Positions 15,349 through 39,250 of a stretch of 64,000 nucleotides of DNA are shown piece after piece. Position numbers and translations under genes: made by a program. Below the pieces are notes generated by a model. The model saw only the letters and a list, made by a program, of their open reading frames with translations, had not been told where the DNA came from and did no database searches. This DNA comes from Sminthopsis crassicaudata (Eukaryota), in assembly GCF_048593235.1 (NCBI RefSeq), contig NC_133619.1:639508558-639572557 (forward strand), in the 5' to 3' direction. How positions within the stretch are numbered: the first letter of the stretch is position 1; the number at the start of each line of letters is the position of its first letter.

Positions 15349-15533
15349 CAGTGCTCCTCAGACTTTAAAAATAGGGGGCCAGTTCACTGTCCCTCAGACT
15401 GTGGGAGGCCGGACTATAGTAAAAACAAAAGCTCCCACTCTGTCTCCTCCCCTCAGCCCATTTGCCATAACCCGGCGGGCCAAAAACGTCCTCAGACGCA
15501 TCTAGCCCTCGGGGAGTAGTTTGAGAACCCCTG
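15349..15533. mobile_element. hAT-superfamily MITE (OC1-like), copy 2, with 8-bp TSD
   Basis: TIRs cagtgctcctcagact...agtttgagaacccctg; TSD ctctaagg (15341-15348) and ctctaaag (15534-15541); homologous to 6280-6449. Confidence 0.85.
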
Positions 15534-15589
15534 CTCTAAAGTGATTTAGAGCATGATTTCTTCTTCTGAAGTTCTCTGTTCATACCCTC

Positions 15590-15950
15590 TGACCACTTAT
15601 CAATTGGGGAATGACTTGTATTCTTACAAACTGGAATTAGTTTTCCATATATTTGAGAAATGAGACCTTTGTCAGAGAAACTTGCTGTAAAATCTTCCCC
15701 CTCCCAGTTTTCTGCTGCCCTCTAATCTTGGAGGCTTTGGTTTTCTTTGGGTAAACCCTTTTTAATTTGGTGTAATTGAAATTACCCCTTTTATATCCCA
15801 TAATACTTTCCATCTTTGGTAATATTTTTTCCTTATCTGTAGATCTGACATCCCTCAATTGTCTTAAGCCATTATCCTTTATGTGTAAATCCTGTACTCA
15901 TTTTGCCCTTATCTCAGATGTTGGTCTATGTCTAGTTTCTGCTAACCTGC
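15590..15950 (-). mobile_element. L1 ORF2 fragment
   Basis: ORF 15637-15858 (FNYTKLKRVYPKKTKASKIRGQQKTGRGKIL...) resembles the L1 ORF2 segment WDYIKLKSFCT...RQPTEWEKIF. Confidence 0.7.
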
Positions 15951-15974
15951 TTTCCAGTTCTCCTCAACCTAGAA

Positions 15975-16085
15975 TGAGGAAGACCTGAGTTCAAATGTGG
16001 CCTCAGGCACTTAATAATTACTAGTTGTGTGAACTTGGGCAGTCACTTAACCCCAGTTTCCTTGGGGAAAAAAAAAAAAACAACC
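15975..16085 (+). mobile_element. 5'-truncated marsupial SINE (WSINE1/MAR1-like) with A-tail
   Basis: gacctgagttcaaatgtggcctcaggcacttaa...gtcacttaaccccagtttcct followed by poly-A. Confidence 0.7.
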
Positions 16086-16369
16086 CAAAATAACAACAAA
16101 AAACAGTTGTCCTAGCACTTTTTGCCAAAAAGCAATTTTTTGTCCCCAAAGCTTGGGTCTTAGGTTTATCAAACATTACACAACTGACTACTGTATATTG
16201 AGTTCCTAATCTATTCCACTGATCTACCTAAAAAAGATACTGGAGGGGAAAATTAGGTAATCTAAACCTCCATCAGTTTGTTTGATGGCTATCACTTTAT
16301 AATTCATCCCCAATCCCTTTTCATTCCTGGGACTTTGCTCCTTTTATGTGGTTTGTTCATCTTTCTTAA

Positions 16370-16500
16370 TGTCTTCCTCATTAAATTGTTAAGATCCTTA
16401 AAGGCAGGGGTTGACTTTTGCCTCTTTTTGTATCCCTCGGGGGTTTAGCACTACGCCTGGCAAACAATAGTAGCCTAATAAATACTTACTGACTGATTGG
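16370..16500 (+). mobile_element. L2 LINE 3' end fragment
   Basis: taagatccttaaaggcagggg...tgtatccc...ttagcac..gcctggca...aataaatacttactgactga is the typical L2 tail. Confidence 0.6.
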
Positions 16501-18264
16501 AGTTGTAATTCCTCACTTACTGTGGCTCTCTGGACCTGAGCACCACCTTTGTTTTTTGTCCTAGAGACCGAGTGAGAGTCCTTGTTGGAGGAAAGGTGTG
16601 ATTTGAGAAGGGATTAAAAATGTCCTTAGGTATTCTCTTTATGACTTTGACTCCCTTTAGTTTTTTGAATGATAAAATCAGATCTAAACAGGACAGGACT
16701 TTAGAGATGGCCTAAGAGTAACAGTAACTGTTAAGAGTACCTCTTAATAGATAAAGAGAGGGTCAGGAACCTGGCTGAGGCCTGAAAGCTAGAAGACCTC
16801 ATCCTGTATCTGAAGCTCACTTATTATCTTTATTTTTTCAATTTAGATTTTATTTTTTTTGAAAATGTTCAATAGCATTTTGTTTTCCAAATACATGTAA
16901 GAGTGCTGGACCTAGAGACTTGGGTTCAAATTCTGACTCAGGGCAATTCAGTTGTCTGAAGTAGCCTAAGGAAATTATGGCACTCCTTTGGTAGACAGTC
17001 CAGTGTCAGAATCTATAAACTTCTGGGAATTTCAGGGTTCCAGCAAGCAGCCTTCTTACCATCACCTCCCAACCAAGTAGCACTACCTGCTTGTAGGTAA
17101 ATCCAAGGATCCCTTGTTGTTGTATTCTTTTCTCCAATCCACCAACCTGTCTACCATCCAAATACACCCCCCCAACCATCATTCAGGAAAGCAGCTTTTT
17201 GGGGATCTGTCTACAACCTTCCCACAAGCTTCCTGAAGCAGCCAAAGCTCCTAAAGACCCAGGAAAGAAAGTTCTTGACACCAAATGTAGTTTTATCCAT
17301 GGAAATGACATTCAAGAAGAGTCCTTGTTTTATGTGACCTTTCCAGCTACCTTGCTGCTGTAATCTCATGTTGTGAGAACTGGGGCTGTGTGGCTTTTCC
17401 ATTAGTGTTTGCACATAGTAGGCACTTCATAAATGCTTTTTCATTCCTTAATTAGAGATTTCATGGACTCTTCATTGGATCTATGAACTTTATTGTATAG
17501 ATGGGAAAACCAAAACTGACACACATGATAATTTGGTTCCAAAATCATGATTTCCCAGTCAGAAATGGAGTCCTTCAGGTTCTGGGGTTCTGAGAACAGA
17601 GAGCTAGAGAATGTTGGAGGGAGATTGGGGCGGCCATGGGTGGTCTCCTGAGAGGAGGAGTCCCGGGGGTGGGTGGGGAGGTGCTGGAGGGAACACAGAG
17701 GGAAGGGTGCTGGAAGCTGTGCAGCCTCGTTAGGCTAGAGCTATTCTAAGAATCTTGGCCCGATTTCAGTTGCTTTCCGGTTAAGACCAGATATTGCCAG
17801 GTGACTTGAGTCCATCCAAGGGGATTTGTCTTGGATCCCCTCCAGCCAGAGTCACTGGCCACTGTCGCCATTTAAGATTATGTAATTTCAAGAGTGCTCA
17901 TTTGCTCCAACCCTCCCCCGGGTTCCCATTTTACTGAAGAGGAAACTAAGAGCAGCCCATAGTCCACAGGGCGGCCAAACTGGTACGGCTAATGGCCACC
18001 TAACTTTGTGGCTTCCTCCTCTGCCGCTGGGGCCTCCTTGGTGTCCCTGTTGTTTGAGGATTAAGTACAAACACCTCAGTTTCCTCTCCAGAACATCTGC
18101 TGGAATCTCAGGCTCTGGAAACCATTCCCCCTCAAAGCTTCCAAAGCCCTGGACATCTCCCATTGGCCTCACCCATGCAGACTCTCCTTCCGTTAGCTGG
18201 TTCCTCCCAGAGGCCCATTTTAAGGAAGAGGTCTAAGTCTTCATCTCTCTCTAGGCTGCTTACC

Positions 18265-18810
18265 AGACTCTCCCCACCATGAACCCAAGCTGGGTACCTT
18301 TGTCTCTTCCTTCCTCCACTCCAGTTTTTAGCTTTGATAGATCATCTTCTCCTTTAGAACAAAAGTCCCTTGAGGGCAGGAAATGCCTTTCCCGCCTTAT
18401 ATTTAGTATTCCAATCAGTGCTTCCTTCTTCAGGATGCTTTTCAATCTCTTCCCACCATGATCCCAAGCTGGGTAGCTTTCTTCATTTCTTTCTCCTTTC
18501 CATTTTTTACCTTTGATATATTGTCCTCCTCCTTTAGAATAGAAGTTCCTTGAAAGCAGGAACTGCCTTTCCCCCCTTATATTTAGTATCCCAATCAGTG
18601 TCTTAGCACCTGGTGCTTTCTTTGCCAGGACACTCTCCAGTCTCTTCCCACCATGACCCCAAAGCTGGGTACCTTCATCTCTTCCTTCCTCTACTCCACT
18701 TTTTACCTTTGATATATTGTCCTCCTCCTTTAGAAGTTCCTTGAGTGCAGGAACTACCTTTTCTTTCTTATATTTAGTATCCCAATCCATATCTTAGCAT
18801 CTGGTGGCTG
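18265..18810. repeat. Three tandem copies (about 180-195 bp) of an L2-tail-containing unit
   Basis: caccatga.ccca.gctggg recurs at 18275, 18454 and 18649; each unit contains ccttga..gcagga..tgccttt..ttatatttagtat. Confidence 0.8.
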
Positions 18811-19129
18811 CACAAAGTAGTCAACTGTCTGGAGTGTAAAGTCCTTCACAATTGACTGCCTTCCCTTCCTGAGGTTATGTTCCTGAACCCAAGTTCAGGG
18901 TTTTATCTGCAGCTAAATTTGCCTGATTATTTTACTATATTGCCTTTCTATTTCCTGCTTCGGCATGGGCTATTCCTCATGCCTCAATAGTCTCCGTAGT
19001 CACTTTTACCTCTTAAAAGAGAAAGAGAAGGTCAGGATCCTGGCTGAGGTCTGAAAGCTAGAAGACCTCATCCTGTATCTGAAGTTTACGTACTATCTTT
19101 ATTTTTCAACTTAGATTTCATTTTATTTG

Positions 19130-19856
19130 AAAACGTTCAATAGTATTTTATTTCCCAAATACATGTAAAGATAATTTTCAACATTTGTTTTTGTAAGACT
19201 TTGTGAGCCAAGTTTTTCTCTCTCCCTTCCTTCCCTCCTCCTTCCCCAAAACAATAAATAATCTGATATGGGTTAAATACATATAATCTTTTAAAATATG
19301 CTTCCATATTTGTCATTGTTGCGCAAGAAAAAGCAGATCAAAAGAGAAAAAACTATGAAAAAGAAAAAAAAAAAAAACAAAGAAAAAAGGGAAAAAGCCT
19401 CTGCTTTGATTCCATATTCAGTCTCCATAGTTTTCTCTCCGGGTGCAGATGGCTCTCTCCATCACAAGTCTATTGGAAGTGCCTTGTATCACCTCATTGT
19501 TGAAGAGAGCCACGTCCACCAGAATGGATCATCGTATAATCCTGCTGTTGCCATGTATAATGATCTCCTGATTTTAGTCATTTCACTCAGCATCAGTTCA
19601 TGTAAGTTTCTCCAGGCCTCTCTGAAATTATCCTGCTGGTCATTTCTTACAGAACAATAATATTCCATAACATTCATATACCACAATTTACCCAGACATT
19701 CTCCAATTGATGGACATCCACCCAGTTTCCAGTTTCTGGCCACTACACAGAGGGCTGCCACAAACATTTTTGCACATGTGGGTCCCTTTCCCTCCTTTAT
19801 GATCTCTTTGGGATACAGGCCCAGTAAAAACACTACTGGACCAAAGGGGATGCACA
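19130..19856 (-). mobile_element. L1 3' end (ORF2 C-terminus plus 3'UTR)
   Basis: ORF 19489-19857 IPFGPVVFLLGLYPKE...MFVAALCVVARNWKLGGCPSIGECLGKLWYMNVMEYY...ELMLSE matches the L1 ORF2 C-terminal domain. Confidence 0.9.
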
Positions 19857-19952
19857 CACAACCTGACAGCCGTTGGGAACTTCATTTGTATTTTGTCCTG
19901 TGATCTCTGGACATCAGCCTCCCTGCTATTCCTCTGTCAGGACATTCTCACT

Positions 19953-20102
19953 TTTTTTTTTTTTTTCCCCCTGAGGCTGGGGTTAAGTGACTTGCCCAGG
20001 GGCACACAACTAGGAAGTGTTAAGTGTCTGAGACCAAATTTGAACTCGGGTCCTCCTGAATTCAAGGCTGGTGCTCTATCCACTGTGCCACCTAGCTGCC
20101 CC
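19953..20102 (-). mobile_element. Full-length WSINE1-like SINE with perfect 15-bp TSD
   Basis: Minus strand begins GGGGCAGCTAGGTGGCACAGTGGATAGAGCACCAGCC and ends in poly-A; TSD caggacattctcact at 19938-19952 and 20103-20117. Confidence 0.92.
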
Positions 20103-21477
20103 CAGGACATTCTCACTCTTAACTCCAAGCATCTGCAAGATGGTCTCCATACCTGGACCATGTTTTTTGTTTTTTGTTTTTTTTCCTTTATCTCTGCCTC
20201 CTGTCCTTCCTTTAACTAACTAACCATCCTACTTTCTACAAGGCAATTTCCTTTTAGTTTCTTTCCCATTTAGGCTGTATCTATGTTATCTGCACAGAAT
20301 GGCTGTCTCCTGTTACAATGTGAAATTTCTTTTTACTTTCTTTGTATCCCCAGCATTTAACACAAAGTAGGCCCTTAATAAATGCCGGTTGACGGCCTAT
20401 GAGACCCAGCAGAGGCTCCTCTGGATTGCATAGTGTCTCTGAGACTTCCTGCCTTAAATCTTTGTCTTGTGACTAGAATCCAAGTGTCATAATGTACCTC
20501 ACCCCCAATTAAATCTCTAACATCTGTCATGTTCTGGACAAAGCTACAATCTGGGGGGAGGGAGAGGAGCTGTGTGGGACCTTAGAGAGCTTATCTTCCC
20601 AGAGAAGGAACAGTTTTTGAAGATGCTTTGTCTGCCCCTCACTACACAGAACAACCAGAGAACTGGGCTCAATTGCAGATAATGTGGAATAATCATCTAC
20701 AGCAGCTTCCTGTTACCCCTTATGAGTATGGAAGCTCAGCCTTGACCTCAGGGAGCTCCTGGTCGGAGGCCAGAGACTGAGGCTTTGTGCTGAAGGATTC
20801 CTAGCCTTGGGAATGGAGGGAACAAGCCCCAGTCCTCTGTCAGTTAACAAACTGCTTAATCACCTGCTATGTTCCGGCAATGTCCTAAGCACAAGGACAG
20901 CAGTGAATGGCTCCCTCCCTTCAAAGAGTTTGCGATCTAAGGCTGGGATGATCTATAAACACAGTCGGGGTCCCAGAGAACAGAGGAAATCAATCATCAT
21001 TTCACTGGGGATCAGGAAATGTAGAAGCTGGTGCTTGAACTGAGACTGAAGTAATCATGAATTCTGGGAAATGGAAGTGATGGGAAGTCCCCCAAAGTCC
21101 CCAAAGGGGACTGCTGGAGCAAATGCTTAGAGATTGCACATGGAGTGCGCGGGCTGCCCGCTGGACTTGAGAACTTGGAATCCGGTGTCTTTTTAAGAGG
21201 TTGGATGACCATTAACTAATATGGAAATATGTTTTCCATGATTGAACATGTGTAACCTATATCAGGGAAAGAGGCGGGGAAGACGAGAATTTAAAACTCA
21301 AGACTTGTAAAAAATTTAAAGTTTAAAACGTTAAAATTGTTTTTATATCTGGCTGAGGAAAATGTTATTCAAAGGAAAAAAGAGTCGAAGTGACTCATCA
21401 GAGGAGACTGATTTGAGTCCAAGAAGAGAGAGAGGGAGGGAAGGGGGGAGGCAACAAGCATTGAAATATTAAGCTCC

Positions 21478-27760: not shown

Positions 27761-30700
27761 TCCTGGGGTTGGAGCAGGCACTTGGGTCCAGATCCCCCCC
27801 CCCCCCCCCCCCTCCGCCGATGATTCAGTATTTCTGTTTAGGGAAATGGAATGTTGGCTAGGAAAGAGCTGCCTTCTGGAGCCATTCGCTTAAGCTCTCT
27901 GAGCCTCCTCTCTGCCCGGGGAGGGAAGCTGAGGCCGGCCGGCGCTGGCGGCCCGAGGGCTCGGGGTAAAGGAGACAGTCTGGGGCGCACTTGGCATCCG
28001 GCCGCTCAGACCTCTCCTTCCTCTGCTCTGGAACTGGGGGCGGCTCGGCCTTCTGGGGCTCTGTTTACTCTGCCCAGTGGGCGCCCCAGGGCCCGGCCCA
28101 CAAGCAGGCGGCCCCAGATAACCCGGAGCGCCTGCGGTCTAATGATAAAGGGGGCAGGAGGGAGCTCAGGTAGAGGCACATCCGCCGCCCGGCCAGGGGC
28201 TGCTCATGCTCCCCCTCCCAGCACCCCCGACCCTGCCACAGGCCCCGGCGCCTTTTCTCCCCGGGGCTTAGAGAGCGTGGGGCTGCCTCCAGGGCGCGTA
28301 CCCTCCCCCACCGTGCACATTCTCACACACTCAGTCTTTTCATCTGTTCTNNNNNNNNNNNNNNNNNNNNNNNNNNNNNNNNNNNNNNNNNNNNNNNNNN
28401 NNNNNNNNNNNNNNNNNNNNNNNNNNNNNNNNNNNNNNNNNNNNNNNNNNNNNNNNNNNNNNNNNNNNNNNNNNNNNNNNNNNNNNNNNNNNNNNNNNNN
28501 NNNNNNNNNNNNNNNNNNNNNNNNNNNNNNNNNNNNNNNNNNNNNNNNNNNNNNNNNNNNNNNNNNNNNNNNNNNNNNNNNNNNNNNNNNNNNNNNNNNN
28601 NNNNNNNNNNNNNNNNNNNNNNNNNNNNNNNNNNNNNNNNNNNNNNNNNNNNNNNNNNNNNNNNNNNNNNNNNNNNNNNNNNNNNNNNNNNNNNNNNNNN
28701 NNNGAAGCTCTTTCCCTGACACATATCGGGGCCATCCCAGGAACAAAGCTCCCTGTGCAGTGTCTCCTGGGCAGCCATCTGTCCTGGGACAGGTGCTGGA
28801 GGGAGAGGAGGGTGACCTGCAGGGTGAGAGGGTGCTCGGCTCCCCTCCCCCACCCGTGGCTGGCCCAGCCATCTGTCTCGGAGGTGTCAGAGGGGCGCTT
28901 TTTCCCCTCCCATGCTCAGCCGTCTCGAGTTACGGAAACAAGTCTGTACAAAAGGCGCGTGTTCTTATACAGATGCACGCAGGTTTCCTGCTCACATGTG
29001 TGCATGTCTCCTGGAGGAAGGGTGGCTTGAGCCTCCGACCCACGAAAAGGGGATCTGCAGATTCCACTCTCGGTTCCCAGGGCGGGGGCCGCCCGCAGCC
29101 AAAGGGGGTTCAGGGGGTTCTTGGCGCTTCCTGCCAGCTTGCAGCTAATCAGACGCTTGCAGGAGAGGGGAGGGAGTGGTAGAGGGCACCAGGGAGCCGC
29201 GGGGGCTGCCCCAATCTAGGCCCTGTAGTCCAGAGCGGTTCCGGGCCCAGGAGGCCTCCTGTTTTTGTCAGCCTGCTACTTCCCTTTCCCCTTCTCTGTC
29301 ACTAACCCCAAGTTTCTCACACTTGGTCACCACGATCTCCCCCGCTCTGTGGGGTGGTGCTGGGGGGAGGGGCATGCGGGGAGGCCGCCCCCAGCCTGTC
29401 TCAGGAACACCTCCCCTCCCCTTAAACCCACAGCGCTGGGCCTGGTGTCCCCGGCTCTCTCCCCTCTCCCCACCTTTACCCCCTTTCCCCGGGCCTGGCT
29501 CCAGCATGGGACTGGACAGGGGCTGCCTTTTGTTTTGCTCCGCCCCCCCCCCTGCCCCATGGTGAAGATGCTCCTCACGGGCCTCCCCGGCCAGAGGGGA
29601 CAGCCTGATCCCAGCCTTCCTCTCGCCCTTCTTCCGCTGGGGTGACAGGGCCAACAGCCCCCCGAGAATGGGATGGGGGCCAGCGGGTGACTGGGCTGCG
29701 CGGGGAGTTCTCCTTTTGATTCCTCCGTACTCAACCATGTCTTTTTTTATAGGAATATCTTTCCAGATAACCTTGTGTCAGCTGCCTTCCGCTCCGTAAG
29801 TCTCAAGGGTCAAGGGAACGGGAGGGCGGGAGGGCGAAGAGTGGGCTCAGCAAATAACCTCCTGTTCTCCCCAATTCCTTTCTCCCCAGTATTCCACCGA
29901 GTACAAGCTGTATGAGACCAACATGACCATGACCACGATAAAGGTAAGGGGGGTGCTGGGATCTCCCCTCTTCTCCCCTCTCTCCTTCTGGGTCTCCTCA
30001 CTTTTTCTCCTTCCTCTCCCTTCTCTCCTTCTTTCCCTCCCTCTTCTTCCCTTCTCTCCTTCTTTCCCTCCCTCTTTCTTCTTCCCTTCTCTCCTTCTTT
30101 CCCTCCCTCTTTCTTCTTCCCTTCTCTCCTTCTTTCCCTCCCTCTTCTTCCCTTCTCTCCTTCTTTCCCTCCCTCTTCTTCCCTTCTCTCCTTCTTTCCC
30201 TCCCTCTTTCTCCTTCCCCCTCTCCTTTCTCCTATTTCCCTCTCTCCCTTTTTTTCTCCTTCCTCTCTTCATTTCCTCCCTTTCCCTTCTTCCCCTCTTC
30301 TTTTCTCTTTTCTTCCCTTTCCCCCTTCATCCTCTTTCTCTTCCCCTTCCCCTCTCCTTTCTCTTCTTTCTGTGACTTTTCTCTCCCTTTTTTCTCCTTC
30401 CCCTCTCTCTCCTTTCTCTCCTTCCTTTTTGTCTGCCTTTATCCCCTTTCCTTTTTCCTCCCCCCTTTTTTCTCTCCCCTCCTCCCCCACCGTCCTTTCC
30501 TTCTTCCCTCTTTCCCTCTTTTCTTCTCCCCCAAGCTCATCAATTGACTTTCCAGTGCTTTTCACTTTCTTGTTCAGTCGGCCTTGGACTGGGCTTCCCA
30601 GTGACTGTAAGGAAATCAGAGCAAAGCAAGTGGTGGGAGGAGGGTTTTTTGGAGGGGAGTTAGTGGAAACGAAGCGTGCCAGTTCTTGTCAAGTTGGGAA

Positions 30701-33690: not shown

Positions 33691-35187
33691 TCAGCCGCTG
33701 CCCGCCAGGCTCTTGAGGGCGGGGTTGGGGTATTCCGGGTTCTCGATGGCGCCGGGCCCGAACTTGAGCTCCAGGAAGCGGCGGTAGTTGTTGGGGGCCT
33801 GGGCCAAGAAGCCGGCGAACTGCAGGGGCACCAGCGGGTGCAGGAAGTGCTCGGGGAACTCCACGTCCTGCCGGTGGTCGAGCCACGTGTCCTTGGTCAT
33901 GACGCCGTTGCGGGGGTAGAAGGGCCACAGGTCCACGTGCAGGTGGTTGGTCTCGCTGTACTGGACCCGGAAGAAGTCCCCCTCCACGGCCTTCTCCCAC
34001 ACGAAGCCCCGCTCGTCCACCACCGAGCCGGCCTCGGCCCCCCGCAGCTGCTCGCAGTTGGCCACGTCCTCCAGGTAGATGCCCAGGTCCACGTCGTAGT
34101 CCCAGGGGATGATGTCGCCGTGGCGCACGGCGCCCAGCAGGCTGCCCCCCTCCAGCCAGTAGCGCACGCGGGCGGCCTCCAGGACGCCCACCACGTGGCG
34201 CGCGGTCTCGCGGAGGGCCTGCAGGCAGCAGGGCGGCGTCCAGCGGCCCTCGTAGAGGTAGGAGGGGGTGTCGCCCACCACCGTGTCGAAGCACCGGGTC
34301 GTCTCCTTGCCGCAGCCGAACCACTCCTGCCGGCCGCCCTCCCAGCTCACCAGCCGCATGTCCAGCGTCCGCAGCAGCGCCTCCCGCCGGGCGCGCCCCT
34401 CCTTCTCGGCCTTCCAGCGGGCGTGGGCCGTGGCCAGGGGGGGCTGCCGGGCGGGGGCGAAGGGCAGGTCCAGGAGGCGCACCGACCACCCGCGGACCGA
34501 GGTCTGCAGGAAGAGGCCGGTGCTCATGGGCCGGGCCAGGGGGGCCGAGAGGTTGAAGAGGTCGCGGGTGCGGACCACCACCACCACCTCCCCGTCCAGC
34601 GCGTCGCAGAAGGGCGGGTCCGGGGCCGGTCCGTAGCTGGCCGTCCACTCGCGCACGTTCACCTCCAGCGCCAGGCAGTGGGGAGGGTTCGCGGTGGCCA
34701 CGGGGGCGGCCACCAGGCGGGCGTGGGTGTTCCTCAGCTCCTCCGCCATGCGCTGGAGCTGCCCGGGGGTCTCCGCTCGTGTGCCATCGGGTACCAGGGC
34801 CACGAACTCCGTGTCCACGTACGTCTCGGGCTGCGAGGCGGCCGCCGGCCGATCCAGGGAGGGCCGGAGCAGGGCCAGCCGCACGTTGGGGACGGCCGGC
34901 AGGGCCAGGGGCGGGTAGGGGAGCGTGTCGGCCGCCACCACGATGGGCTGGCTGGGGTCCAGGTGCAGGAAGGAGGCCACCACCTCGGGCACCGCGTTGT
35001 CGAAGGCTTCGAACTCTCGGATGAGGACGGTGACCCGGGGGTCGGGGGCCGAGTGGGCGAGGCGGGGGGGCCGGACCGCCCGCCCCCCCCGCCGACGCTG
35101 CTGCTGCAGCCGGGACACGTAGAAGAAGACGAGGAGGTTGAGGACGATGGCGGCCGCCAGCGCGACCTGGCACCGGGTGAGACGCAT
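33691..35187 (-). CDS. FKRP: Fukutin-related protein (ribitol-5-phosphate transferase), 498 aa, single coding exon
   Basis: [26 protein letters not shown]-terminal TM, zinc-finger cysteines (WFGC..TRCF..PPCC), LicD/NTase motif [25 protein letters not shown]-terminus [13 protein letters not shown]; splice acceptor after a polypyrimidine tract at 35230-35229. Confidence 0.98.
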
Positions 35188-36757
35188 CTGGCTTTCGAAA
35201 GTGGGGCTAGCCCTGGGATCCTGGCAGCCTGGGGGAGTTGGAGGGGGGAAAGGCGGGGAGACGGTGAGGCCGGGCTCACCCCCCAAACTCCCCTTCCTCC
35301 CCTCCCTCCAACACGTCCCCTCCAGCAGCCCACCCTGACTGACTCCCTAAGGAGAGCAGGGTTCGGAGCTCTTTTACCAAGGAAACTGAGGCGTGAGAGG
35401 GCCATTAGCTCGTGGCTCTCCCAGCAGCCAAGCCCTAGCTCAGCGCCGCATCTGGTCCTGCGGGGGGGGGGGGGGGTCCCTGTTCCAATTTACGCCCCTC
35501 GTAAACAGCTCGCCAATCCTGGCCCAGCCGCGGTGTCCCGGAGCACAGGGCCCCGCCTTCCCGGGGGTCTGCTGCGGGTCTCCCACGTGCCAGGACTTCA
35601 TGCTCCTCCCCAGGACTGAATTCTGCTCCTTTCTTCTGTCCCTCTCCAGAGCCCCAGCCCCCCTCAGGGAAGCCAGCCTCTCCACTCTCCCTGGGAGGAT
35701 GACTCAGTGCCCAGCCCTAAGCCCCGGGGCAGGGACCAGAGAATGGAGGCTGAGTTCTGGAAGAGGCCGGCAAGCCTGTTTCCACCCAGGGCCGCTGAAG
35801 GGAAGCGGCCTCATTCCGAAGCCCCCCAGAGGCCCCAGTGGCTGCTCCATTCCTCTTCTACACGGGGTCTGGACCCAGGTGGGCAGGTGCTCCTGGAGGA
35901 GGGGCAGGCGTTCCCGGAGGAGGGGCTGGCTCACTGTCGGCAGCCTGGGCTCCCTGCGCCTTCTCCCCAGCCGTGCCCAGACTGGTCCCAGCAGCCTCAG
36001 CCAGCCCAAGGAAGCTTCCTCGTCTCTGCCCTCAGCCCCGAAAACCAGCTTCCTTCCCAGGCCTCTCCTACGGAGCCCGGCTGGTCCCAGGACACGAGTA
36101 TTTAAAGGCCTCGAGCCAGGGGGCAAGCTCACTGACTGTGGAGGCTCCCTGCTACCCCACAGGCTAACCCCGCCAACTCCTGGGGCTCTGAGCCCCTACA
36201 GAGAGCATCTGGGGATCACTGAGTCCTATTATTTTACTGATAGGGAGACTGAGGCATAGAAGGGAAGGGTTCTGGGTAAGTTGCCCGAACAGTGGGAACA
36301 GCCTCCCCTCTGTGAACTCATCACCAAGGAGTGCCCCCCGGGAGCGAGACCCTGGGCTGGGGCAGGGGAGGCGGAATGGGGGGCAGGGAGAAGGGTCTGG
36401 CCCAGTGCCAGGCCTCTCTGGAAGGTCAGTCTAGGAGGGAGACGAGACAGACACAGACAACTACCGTACCAGTGGACTGCTGGATCGAGCGGGGACGTTA
36501 GACGTCATCTCCAAGGCCCTGGTGGCAATCCTAGCTCTGACCCTGACTTCCCGCGTGCCCTTAGGGAAAGTCCCTTCCTCTCTCTGGGCCTCAGTTTCCC
36601 CGTCTGTAAAAGGGATGTTCTGGTTCTTTGAAGGTCTAGGATGCTGAGAAATGAGGGTGGGCATCGTGGTAAAGGGAGAGTGGCCTCCCCCAGACCCGCT
36701 CCAGCCCAGTCTCTATCCTAGTCCAGCAGGCCCGAGATTGGGGGCCCCAGAGCTTAC

Positions 36758-36880
36758 CTTTTTAGGACAGAGGAGTATAGAAATCCCCAAGGCTGACTGC
36801 TTTTCCTTCTGAAGAGTTAGGAAGGGAAAAAACCTGAGTTAGATGCGATTTGGGGACCCCGCTCTCAGGTCTCCTATCCC
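36758..36880 (-). other. FKRP: Candidate internal non-coding FKRP exon
   Basis: Strong donor AAG|GTAAGC on minus (GT at 36757-36756); caaatcgcatctaactc resembles the human FKRP 5'UTR as I recall it; acceptor not defined. Confidence 0.3.
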
Positions 36881-36988
36881 CTCAGGTGTACCCCAGTGAG
36901 CCGCCCCCCTTGAAAGGGACAGGGCTGATTTTCTGCCTGGCGCAGCTGACGGGGGAAGGGAACGACTTGGCCTCTCCTTAAAGGGGGA

Positions 36989-37831
36989 GTAACCACTGGT
37001 AACTTCCCTTCCCCCTTTGGCATCAGTCTAGAATTAGGAAAGGGGTAAGTGGAAAAGAGGGAGTAACCCATAGCAAACTGCCTCTCCCTCCCAACCCTGA
37101 GTGGGTCTGGACACCTTAAGAGAGACTGAGAAGAGCCTGTTACCACAGCAACCATCCTTCCTCATCAGGACCCCTTCCCAATCCTCGCCCCAGCTTGTTA
37201 CCCATTATAGTGGGGGGGGGTTATGGCAATCACCCTTTCTTTCTTTGGGCATTAGCTCACTGGGGTCTAGGTGTGGTACTGGGCCTGGATACCATAGCAA
37301 CCAACAGAGGTAGGGATGGACTCAGCAGATATCTGGGAAGGGGCAAGATTAAGGGGACCATGGTAACAGCTCTATAGTGGTTCCCATGGCAACTGGCCTA
37401 GGAGAATGGGGGTAGGGCCACTGATCCTGGCCCAGGGTATCCTCAAGTTCTGGGGGAGAGGAGAGAATAAGGTAAGGGTTTGAAATCATGGCAAACAAGC
37501 AGGTTGGGGGGGGGGAGATTGGCTGGGGGTTGGAGAAGAGCCTCCCTGAGGCCGGCAGGATTGCTATGGCAACCCATGGGGGGGGGAGGGATCCAGGATT
37601 GGCAATTTGTAGTACCCAGGGTGGGCAGGATAGAGGGGTAGTGTGAAGGGTCATAGTTGCTATGGCAACCGCGGGGGATCCAAGAGACAGCGTGCAGACT
37701 GGTTCCCTGTTTCTATAGCAACCATTTAAGGATGGAGAGAAAGAGCTCTAAGGAGGGGCTGGAACGGGAGGGGGCCAAGGAGAGGTGGGCTGGATTCGAG
37801 ATTGGGAAGGCCTCTCGGTTGCTAAAGTAAC
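36989..37831. promoter_or_regulatory. Homotypic cluster of about 10 RFX X-box-like motifs
   Basis: GTTGCTATGGCAAC (37656), GTTCCCATGGCAAC (37380), GTTTCTATAGCAAC (37709), ATTGCTATGGCAAC (37560), GATACCATAGCAAC (37288), GTTACCACAGCAAC (37139), GTTGCTAAAGTAAC (37818) and others. Confidence 0.75.
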
Positions 37832-38186
37832 CGGGGCGAGGGGCGGAGCCGGGAGGATAGACCGGCTGGGATGCCGGGTAGGAGGCTGAGGGGAGGGGTG
37901 TCAAAGGGCTAGGACCAAGGGCAGCCCTCCCGGCGCGCGGCCGCCGCCCTGCGCGCCTCCCTCGGGGGCTGAAAGCGCGCGTGCGCGGGCTGGCGCGCGG
38001 AGGTAGGGCGCGAGGCTCCTCCCCCCTCCCTCATCCCCGCGGGCTCGAGCGCGCGTGCGCGCGTGCAACCGCCGTCCGCGAGGGAGGCGCGCGGGGCAGG
38101 AGGCGGCCCGCGAGGGCGCGCGCGCGCTCCAGCCGCCGGCCTCCATGATGGAGGAGCGAGCGGCCCCCGCCGCCGCCGCCGCCGCA

Positions 38187-38218
<32 letters not shown>

Positions 38219-39250
38219 GACCGCCCCCGCCTGCCGCCCGCCGGCCCCCAGCCCCGCCAAGGGCGGCGGGGGCGGCGGGGGCGGGGCCGGCGGGGGGAGC
38301 CCCGGGGCGGGCCCCGAGCCGCTGAGCCTGCCCGGCATCCTGCACTTCATCCAGCACGAGTGGGCGCGCTTCGAGGCGGAGAAGGCGCGCTGGGAGGCCG
38401 AGCGGGCCGAGCTGCAGGTGAGCCGCCCCCGGCCCGGGCCGCCGCCGCCCCCGCCCCCGCCCCCCCGGCCCAGGGCCCGCCCCCGCCCGGCCCGCCCCCC
38501 GCCGTTGCCCGAGCCCCGGGCCCCTCACCCGCCGCCGCTGCCGCCGCCGCCGCCGCCATCTTGGAGAGCAATGGCCGCCACCCCCCCTCCCCGCGGGAGG
38601 GAGCGGAGTGGGGAGGGGAGGGGGAGCGGGGAGCGACCCCCCCACGGCCGGGCTCGAGCTCCTGCGGGAGAGGGGGGAGCGGGGAGCGCCCCCCAGGTCC
38701 GGCCTCGAACTCCTGCGGAGGAGGAGAAGGCTGGACCGCGGAAAGTGCCCCCACCACTCACCGTGGGAGGGGGAATGACCCTCTAAGCCCCGGGGAAGGA
38801 GACGCGGAGACCCCCACCCCAGCTCTCCCCCACCCTCTGTCCTTCCTAACGCGAATCACCGGGTGAGAAGTGAGACTGGGGGGCCGGCGCCCCCCACAAT
38901 GGGGAATGCGGGGACCGGGGAACTCCCCCCTCCCGCGTTCGGGGCCTGTTGGAATGGAGGAGGGGAAAGGGAAGGAGTGGGTAGGGGGGGGGCCCTTGCC
39001 CCCACCGCCGGAGCTTTCGGGCCTTGGGGAAGAAGTGGGAGAAGTAGCTCTGCACCGGGATTTGCTTGCAGGTGGGCGTGAAGGCGGCGTCCCGCCTCCG
39101 GAAGTGCCCGGCGCCCCTTTACCCGAGGCTGCTTTCGGGGGGGAGCCCCAATGTGCTGCTTCCTGCTGAGAGGGGGAGGGGTCCCAGCCGGGCCGGGACC
39201 CTGAGCGTCCCAGCAGTGACAGGAGCAAGGCCCGGGGGGCGGGGCTCCTG
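37830..39250. promoter_or_regulatory. Shared STRN4/FKRP CpG-island promoter (NRF1-like, YY1 and ETS motifs)
   Basis: GCGCGTGCGC repeats near 37976 and 38050; YY1 GCCGCCATCTTG at about 38551-38563; CCGGAAGTG at 39098-39106. Confidence 0.75.

Follow-up and report, generated by a model that had tools for sequence, protein, structure and literature searches.

What is a dense array of RFX-type X-boxes doing between the genes FKRP and STRN4? The question is raised by a stretch of 64,000 nucleotides from Sminthopsis crassicaudata, a dasyurid marsupial (contig NC_133619.1 of assembly GCF_048593235.1, positions 639,508,558 to 639,572,557, forward strand), hereafter called the window, in which the array occupies positions 36989 to 37831, within the 2.9-kb head-to-head interval that separates the coding starts of FKRP, on the minus strand, and STRN4. 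The former is a dystroglycanopathy gene, and the latter encodes a STRIPAK scaffold. RFX factors are usually discussed by way of one or two X-boxes in the promoters of cilia, spermiogenesis, and major histocompatibility complex (MHC) genes, and the ciliary and spermiogenic promoters usually carry theirs near the start site. We consider it likely that this array represents a genuine homotypic cluster of RFX X-boxes, ancient in origin, which would act as a multivalent RFX platform at the divergent STRN4/FKRP promoter region.

The ten motif copies reported by the initial annotation of this DNA were all found at exactly the coordinates given for them, and two weaker elements, at 37197 and 37482, raise the total to 12 sites (10 clear plus 2) in about 850 bp. 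The sites are as follows, with scores in bits from a palindromic X-box matrix.

36989 to 37003, plus strand: X-box 1, GTAACCACTGGTAAC, a variant with a 3-nt spacer and no mismatches to GTNRCCNNNRGYAAC; an orthologue is present in Antechinus, koala, and Dromiciops.
37063 to 37077, plus strand: X-box 2, GTAACCCATAGCAAA, also a variant with a 3-nt spacer, degraded in this species; the Antechinus, koala, and Dromiciops orthologue, GTAACCATAGCAAC, reaches 16.9 bits.
37139 to 37152, plus strand: X-box 3, GTTACCACAGCAAC, with no mismatches to the International Union of Pure and Applied Chemistry (IUPAC) pattern and 16.3 bits; identical in koala and Dromiciops, with a different first base in Antechinus.
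37197 to 37210, plus strand: weak X-box-like element, GTTACCCATTATAG; GTTACC is shared by the four marsupials except Antechinus, where it reads GTTATC.
37288 to 37301, plus strand: X-box 4, GATACCATAGCAAC, 14.7 bits; koala retains it, the Dromiciops copy is degraded, and a 27-bp deletion has eliminated it from Antechinus.
37354 to 37367, plus strand: X-box 5, GGGACCATGGTAAC, 11.2 bits (15.1 bits in Dromiciops).
37380 to 37393, plus strand: X-box 6, GTTCCCATGGCAAC, 17.7 bits; its koala counterpart is the perfect palindrome GTTGCCATGGCAAC.
37482 to 37495, plus strand: decayed X-box, GAAATCATGGCAAA, 7.6 bits, compared with 20.3 bits for the koala and 17.3 bits for the Dromiciops orthologue.
37560 to 37573, plus strand: X-box 7, ATTGCTATGGCAAC, 16.0 bits; conserved in all four marsupials.
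37656 to 37669, plus strand: X-box 8, GTTGCTATGGCAAC, 19.5 bits, the best score of the window, with no mismatches on the minus strand; deleted in koala.
37709 to 37722, plus strand: X-box 9, GTTTCTATAGCAAC, 15.7 bits; conserved in all four marsupials.
37818 to 37831, plus strand: X-box 10, the most proximal, GTTGCTAAAGTAAC, 16.1 bits; conserved in all four marsupials and located 314 bp upstream of the STRN4 ATG.

These elements show the inverted RGYAAC repeat that characterizes the dimer X-box of RFX1 to RFX3, GTNRCC(N0-3)RGYAAC. In particular, the pattern with a 2-nt spacer fits eight sites of the array with 0 to 2 mismatches, the pattern with a 3-nt spacer fits two (36989 and 37063), and the strong half-site RGYAAC lies on the STRN4-sense strand in 11 of the 12. 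The consensus of a count matrix compiled from 55 sites of seven species is GTTRCYATRGYAAC(C), with counts of G49 T53 T47 R51 C54 Y55 A48 T48 R55 G51 Y52 A54 A55 C51 and a following C in 37 of 55 cases; the agreement of these counts with the X-box is mostly circular, since the sites were picked by the palindromic scoring matrix. Independent of site picking are the central AT, which is weakly weighted in that scoring matrix, and the 3' flanking C, which lies outside it, and both agree with published RFX motifs. Judged by their sequence, the sites of the array are canonical RFX X-boxes, and the 55-site matrix upholds their initial identification as such.

The concentration of the sites is equally distinctive. 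Throughout the 64 kb, seven sites score at least 14 bits, and every one of them falls within 37139 to 37831, whereas 5,000 dinucleotide-preserving shuffles of the array region gave a mean of 0.003 such sites and a maximum of one; several sites of one factor are therefore gathered in about 1 kb well above a composition-matched background, and the density claimed by the initial annotation withstands that comparison. Outside the array, sites of at least 12 bits occur at most singly in any 860-bp stretch of the window, the highest site count of any such stretch being 1 to 2, and the next-best scores beyond it are 13.5 bits (at 7110) and 13.4 bits (at 490). Furthermore, 7 of the 10 loci of the window that match the IUPAC pattern with at most one mismatch belong to the array, as do 11 of the 33 plus-strand RGYAAC half-sites, which lie inside 36988 to 37831, a segment amounting to 1.3% of the window. 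The two isolated X-box-like elements, at 490 to 503 (ATCACCATGGTAAC) and 7110 to 7123 (GTTTCTATGGAAAC), are the only sites above 12 bits outside the array, and the latter had correctly been singled out as the one comparable site elsewhere.

The same matrix was applied to the FKRP loci of Antechinus, koala, Dromiciops, a Pipistrellus bat, Chinese hamster, dromedary, and platypus, a sample of marsupials, eutherians, and one monotreme. The sites found are listed here, with distances from the FIQHEW codon of STRN4 exon 1.

Window: 10 clear and 2 decayed sites, from -1357 to -528.
Antechinus: 10 sites, within a range of about -530 to -1600 that holds jointly for the three marsupials of the comparison.
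Koala: 12 sites, within the same joint range.
Dromiciops: 11 sites, within the same joint range.
Pipistrellus bat: 8 sites, from -557 to -1188.
Chinese hamster: 6 sites, about 3.3 to 3.8 kb upstream.
Dromedary: 6 sites, about 400 bp from exon 1, in an inverted block.
Platypus: one strong proximal site (-502) and one distal site (-2212).

A cluster of X-boxes at the same position is shared by seven therian species, that is, by the window, three further marsupials, and three eutherians. The density across seven species is 10 to 12.6 sites per kb in the arrays versus 0.022 per kb outside them (4 sites in 184 kb), and the X-box nearest to STRN4 is about equally far from the FIQHEW codon in the window (-528), the bat (-557), and the platypus (-502). 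In the platypus, the DNA between the two sites is filled by copies of a MIR-like short interspersed nuclear element (SINE). A MIR-like SINE core fragment also occurs in the window, at 36555 to 36617, with many matching copies in the platypus locus.

Among the eutherians, the sites of hamster and dromedary are orthologous to each other, and an element of about 600 bp can be aligned across the three species. Between marsupials and eutherians, the spacers are unalignable, and blastn connects the X-boxes only, in a many-to-many fashion; one-to-one orthology of marsupial and eutherian sites was considered and is not demonstrable, because the motifs alone match. The proximal spacings of dasyurids (about 100, 53, and 109 bp) resemble those of eutherians (111 to 121, 52 to 54, and 102 to 108 bp). 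This resemblance is probably coincidental, and the dasyurid spacing looks derived, because an additional site, located between 37709 and 37818, is present in both koala and Dromiciops and lost in dasyurids.

Two of the eutherian loci present local complications. In the dromedary assembly (GCA_000803125.3), a block at positions 18229 to 21476 of the reverse complement, inverted with respect to FKRP and lying beside two N gaps, contains STRN4 exon 1 together with a further copy of the array. This second copy differs from the first by 14 indels and 0 mismatches, and because the copies differ by indels only, the inverted block is most likely an assembly artefact; the extra camel X-boxes (reverse complement, 20308 to 20863) were accordingly rejected as an inverted assembly duplicate. 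With this exception, no second copy of the array was found in the 64 kb of the window or in 184 kb of related loci. In the hamster, about 2.5 kb of a TG/CG-rich simple repeat (GTGTGTGCTCTGTGCGCG...; about 15430 to 17946 of the reverse complement) lies between the array and Strn4 exon 1. A CpG-island-like block adjoining the hamster array, considered as a second promoter, was rejected, as it corresponds to this simple-repeat expansion. The repeat resembles an expanded form of the GCGCGTGCGC-type promoter motif found at 38049 to 38066 of the window.

The alignment of the four marsupials allowed us to compare the rates at which motifs and spacers change. Motif columns evolve more slowly, with a pairwise divergence of 0.108 versus 0.191 in spacers (circular-shift P of 0.006) and with 81% of columns invariant versus 67%. 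An ascertainment-free test, in which the columns were set on the window and koala was compared with Dromiciops, gave 0.086 versus 0.154 (Fisher P = 0.043). Single sites come and go, with small indels driving gain and loss, and the total stays at 10 to 12 in marsupials: the site at 37288 is lost in Antechinus and that at 37656 in koala, and the site at 37482, decayed here, is perfect in koala. The marsupial-eutherian split dates to roughly 160 million years ago. As read from these alignments, the cluster has been maintained since that split, in density and in position, while the spacers were replaced. The pattern fits stabilizing selection on a homotypic cluster and speaks strongly against a neutral relic. 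Motifs that match many-to-many amid unalignable spacers are the outcome expected of selection on the number of sites, with turnover of the individual copies, and the comparison supports the view that the cluster is under selection.

A probable mechanism can be outlined for such a cluster. The array would represent a multivalent, high-occupancy landing platform for RFX dimers, with RFX1, RFX2, and RFX3 as binders through their common motif and perhaps RFX7 as well. Many sites of moderate to high affinity would ensure robust occupancy despite the gain or loss of single sites, and in concert they may determine or buffer the level of transcription from the divergent promoter region of STRN4 and FKRP. 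Directly observed are the motifs, their local enrichment, the lack of homology between repeat units, the conserved position, and the slower change of motif columns; RFX binding in S. crassicaudata, the direction and strength of any transcriptional response, the gene that responds, and the tissues in which it does so are what we infer.

Homotypic clusters of binding sites are a general concept for vertebrate promoters and enhancers. The array is like them in having many copies of one motif in less than 1 kb, above chance, and in showing turnover of sites with persistence of the cluster; different from typical examples, its density of about 10 to 12 sites per kb and its persistence since the marsupial-eutherian split are unusual. 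We found no RFX homotypic cluster of this size in the searchable literature. In the MHC class II module S-X-X2-Y, the RFX5 complex acts with NF-Y on an RFX-type X element near the promoter. The array is likewise near a promoter, and a few ATTGG (CCAAT) elements occur among its sites; different from the module, however, its sites are full palindromic dimer X-boxes, with no ordered S-X-X2-Y arrangement. Nematode DAF-19 targets have few X-boxes per gene. For such targets of Caenorhabditis elegans, multiple X-boxes have been proposed to tune expression (Chu et al. 2012, PMC3245922), and the array shares with them the presence of more than one X-box per target, a comparison that we offer as a lead only. 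With the canonical RFX X-box promoters of ciliary and spermiogenic genes (for example Dync2li1 and, from Kistler et al. 2015, PMC4498915, the RFX2 targets), it shares the 14-bp inverted repeat GTTRCYATRGYAAC and the promoter-proximal position. In contrast to those promoters, however, it spreads 10 to 12 sites across about 850 bp, the last of them lying 314 bp upstream of the ATG, and Strn4 is neither RFX2 dependent in testis nor a cilia-list gene. The array can thus be classed among the homotypic clusters of binding sites, at the promoter of an RFX target, and is unusual in the number of its sites and in its age.

In such a cluster, nature offers a clean case of selection that concerns how many sites are present and not which ones. 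Lying between two medically relevant genes, it is also a compact and easily deletable element for testing multivalent RFX binding, with which the redundancy of RFX paralogues at nonciliary targets could be addressed, as well as the question of whether noncoding variants affect the dosage of FKRP or STRN4. Its novelty, suspected from the start, is borne out within the searchable literature, where we found no description of an X-box array at STRN4/FKRP; a paper with many co-mentions of STRN4 and RFX was set aside, as it concerns only separate genome-wide association loci at RFX7 and STRN4.

The features of STRN4 and FKRP around the array are the following.

37832 to 38144, plus strand: CpG-island promoter and 5' leader of STRN4, with GC-box-like and GCGCGTGCGC-like elements and a CpG observed/expected ratio of 0.9 to 1.15.
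38145 to 38417, plus strand: coding part of STRN4 exon 1 (MMEER...FIQHEW...AERAELQ), recognized by translation, followed by a GTGAGC donor and homologous to exon 1 of hamster, camel, and platypus.
33691 to 35187, minus strand: FKRP coding exon (498 amino acids plus stop), located by motif search and confirmed by translation; its matches carry the Pfam domains FKRP_N and LicD.

The array lies directly upstream of STRN4, as first described, with exon 1 beginning at 38145 and exon 2 at about 41.5 kb. The block from 37832 to 38144 is the best conserved among marsupials (pairwise divergence of 0.086). Near the N terminus of STRN4, a (GCC)n repeat at 38163 to 38200 encodes a run of about 19 alanines (23 residues if the interrupting Pro and Thr are included). 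The FKRP protein shows 99% identity to its Antechinus flavipes counterpart and about 80% to eutherian FKRPs, from which a dasyurid origin of the window follows. A search of two long GC-rich open reading frames against Pfam gave no match.

As regards occupancy, Kistler et al. (2015) defined RFX2 targets by a peak in chromatin immunoprecipitation sequencing (ChIP-seq) between -500 and +50 of the start site in germ cells of male mice at postnatal day 21 (P21), which yielded 977 genes (PMC4498915). Mouse Strn4 is one of these promoter targets, and Fkrp is absent from the table (PMC4498915, Table S1). These data support RFX occupancy near Strn4 in a eutherian and not a dependence of Strn4 on RFX2. 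The ChIP-seq evidence to which the initial annotation had looked is therefore favourable as far as the listing of Strn4 goes; that the mouse peak is the array is what we infer.

This last step is one of several points that weigh against our interpretation of the array as an RFX platform at this promoter region. In the hamster, which serves as a proxy for the mouse, the 500 bp upstream of exon 1 lack an X-box, and the array lies about 2.5 kb of repeat away. For Strn4, the table of RFX2 targets contains no entry for differential expression in Rfx2-/- testis, whether at P21 or at P30, and gives "no" under SysCilia as well as under CilDB at high stringency (PMC4498915, Table S1). Neither STRN4 nor FKRP was found in the searched supplements of a human in silico study of RFX targets and of a study of Rfx6 in beta cells. 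Moreover, the X-box matrix is an approximate one that we built ourselves from the consensus and did not take from JASPAR, and the constraint test within marsupials is only modestly significant, with conserved blocks occurring in the spacers too. As for the unchanged expression of Strn4, it could reflect redundancy with RFX1 and RFX3 or binding without consequence.

The alternatives differ in the gene, or the function, that they assign to the array, and FKRP deserves to be considered first. In the NCBI gene models of the opossum, the signal-anchor N terminus of FKRP is replaced in isoforms X2 and X3 by an alternative one, MILPPPPTHK(Q)EKQSALGICIHHSPKK, which is encoded by two upstream exons spliced into the coding exon, and the gene range begins about 895 bp from the start of the STRN4 coding sequence. 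Counterparts of both exons can be placed in the window.

37203 to 37235, minus strand: putative homologue of the opossum FKRP alternative 5' exon (MILPPPPTHK); tblastn puts the peptide at the corresponding G-run of Dromiciops.
36758 to 36799, minus strand: homologue of the second opossum FKRP 5' exon (EKQSALGI...PKK), with 65% identity over 20 amino acids in tblastn; it was found in Antechinus, koala, and Dromiciops too.

The first of these exons falls inside the array, and its predicted donor, GGTAAC, is the minus strand of the weak X-box at 37197. The second, which as read from the sequence has a polypyrimidine/AG acceptor and an AAG|GTAAGC donor, lies about 190 bp past the distal end of the array. 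Because the ATG of the first exon is lost in S. crassicaudata, the two exons would form a noncoding leader in this species. Small RNA runs from several independent studies each contain about 17 to 18% of the sampled words of 36950 to 37850, a share that suggests compatibility with an exon-sized transcribed piece. The array had initially been placed inside FKRP intron 1; it is indeed flanked by the FKRP coding exon on one side and STRN4 exon 1 on the other, but since, on the opossum model, the leader exons map within and just beyond it, that placement is only approximate, and for the same reason FKRP is a serious candidate target.

It is possible, if on balance improbable, that the array mainly serves FKRP, its X-boxes lying in and around a minus-strand leader exon as part of an alternative promoter or as intragenic RFX sites close to a start site. 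The upstream exon of opossum isoforms X2 and X3, whose start codon, about 895 bp from the beginning of the STRN4 coding sequence, falls within array territory, the mapping of the peptide together with the coincidence of donor and weak X-box, and the RNA signal all point in this direction, whereas the mouse RFX2 target table has Strn4 and not Fkrp, and the start codon of the leader exon is not conserved in the window. Such a role for FKRP is compatible with an RFX platform at the divergent promoter region, which can serve both genes.

Less credible, and in our opinion unlikely, is the model put forward in the initial annotation, in which the array drives a tissue-specific upstream start of STRN4, in testis or ciliated cells, under the ciliogenic and spermiogenic programme of RFX2 and RFX3. 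The presence of RFX2 at the Strn4 promoter in mouse germ cells agrees with it, as do the orientation of RGYAAC along the STRN4-sense strand at 11 of 12 sites and the occurrence of some RNA over part of the array. However, Strn4, whose level in the Rfx2 knockout had been proposed there as a check, is unchanged in testis at both ages and falls outside the published ciliome lists, and the FKRP leader exon explains the RNA signal at least as well. Ciliary or germline control of STRN4 and an upstream start site are thus unsupported, and the available expression data count against them.

A further alternative assigns to the array an architectural role instead of that of a conventional enhancer, as a boundary between the CpG island and methylated DNA, as a looping hub based on RFX dimerization, or as a sink that buffers free RFX proteins, so that it would not work through the expression of the neighbouring genes as such. 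The DNA of the array is CpG poor (observed/expected of 0 to 0.08 over 37000 to 37600), and the array ends at the onset of the STRN4 CpG island, at about 37800; in both the window and the bat, this end coincides with a jump of the observed/expected ratio from about 0.1 to about 1. The number of sites, far above the one or two X-boxes that RFX target promoters usually carry, and the unchanged Strn4 of the Rfx2 knockout could be accounted for in the same way. We nevertheless regard this role as quite unlikely. With similarly low confidence, one could also conceive of a therian-wide RFX "super-site" that predates the marsupial-eutherian split and whose selected function would depend on multivalency itself, perhaps as a looping or clustering hub based on RFX dimerization, a CpG-island boundary, or a dosage buffer for RFX factors, and not on the ordinary activation of a single neighbouring gene.

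The manner in which the array arose bears on the last alternative. The initial annotation held that the spacers are unrelated and that the array is no simple tandem repeat, and this is what we found. Tandem Repeats Finder, run over 36500 to 38200 with a minimum score of 30, detected no tandem repeat in the array and only two short GC-rich simple repeats in the promoter and exon 1, with periods of 8 and 3; local alignments of 45-nt flanks for all pairs of sites gave mean scores of 13.2 and 12.6, at the level of control DNA (13.4), and repeat grouping recovered only the motif with a few flanking bases. Centre-to-centre spacings range from 26 to 109 bp, with no helical phasing obvious by inspection, so that the head-to-tail homologous units and regular period of a tandem repeat or minisatellite are both missing, and a tandem repeat is ruled out by the program and by the flank alignments. 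Two pairs of units do carry short extra similarity: the two distal ones share 35 nt at 71% identity with a spacing of 74 bp, and those at 37560 and 37656 have about 21 nt in common plus a GGGGGATCCA block. For this reason, local duplication probably helped to build the array, which is no longer a repeat. A relic without function, whether a decayed minisatellite or an ancient transposon fragment with an X-box-like palindrome in its unit, could claim these traces of local duplication in its favour, but it is strongly disfavoured and very improbable, given the negative repeat search, the flank similarity at control level, the motif columns that change at about half the spacer rate, and the fact that, ever since marsupials and eutherians diverged, 6 to 12 nearly perfect palindromes of 14 bp have been kept at one orthologous position amid spacers beyond alignment, which would not be expected of neutral DNA.

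Besides the cluster of X-boxes, a few other elements of the locus were noticed. A search of the array against Rfam, at E values up to 1, found no structured RNA. On the minus strand, a very stable hairpin with a purine arm and a pyrimidine arm is predicted at 35225 to 35327 (-65 kcal/mol, z = -3.55), in the FKRP intron; it extends up to the splice acceptor of the coding exon, some 40 nt before the FKRP ATG. Many microRNA families matched this hairpin below threshold, on both strands, and all of them scored far under their gathering scores. Finally, a run of 353 N interrupts the window at 28351 to 28703.

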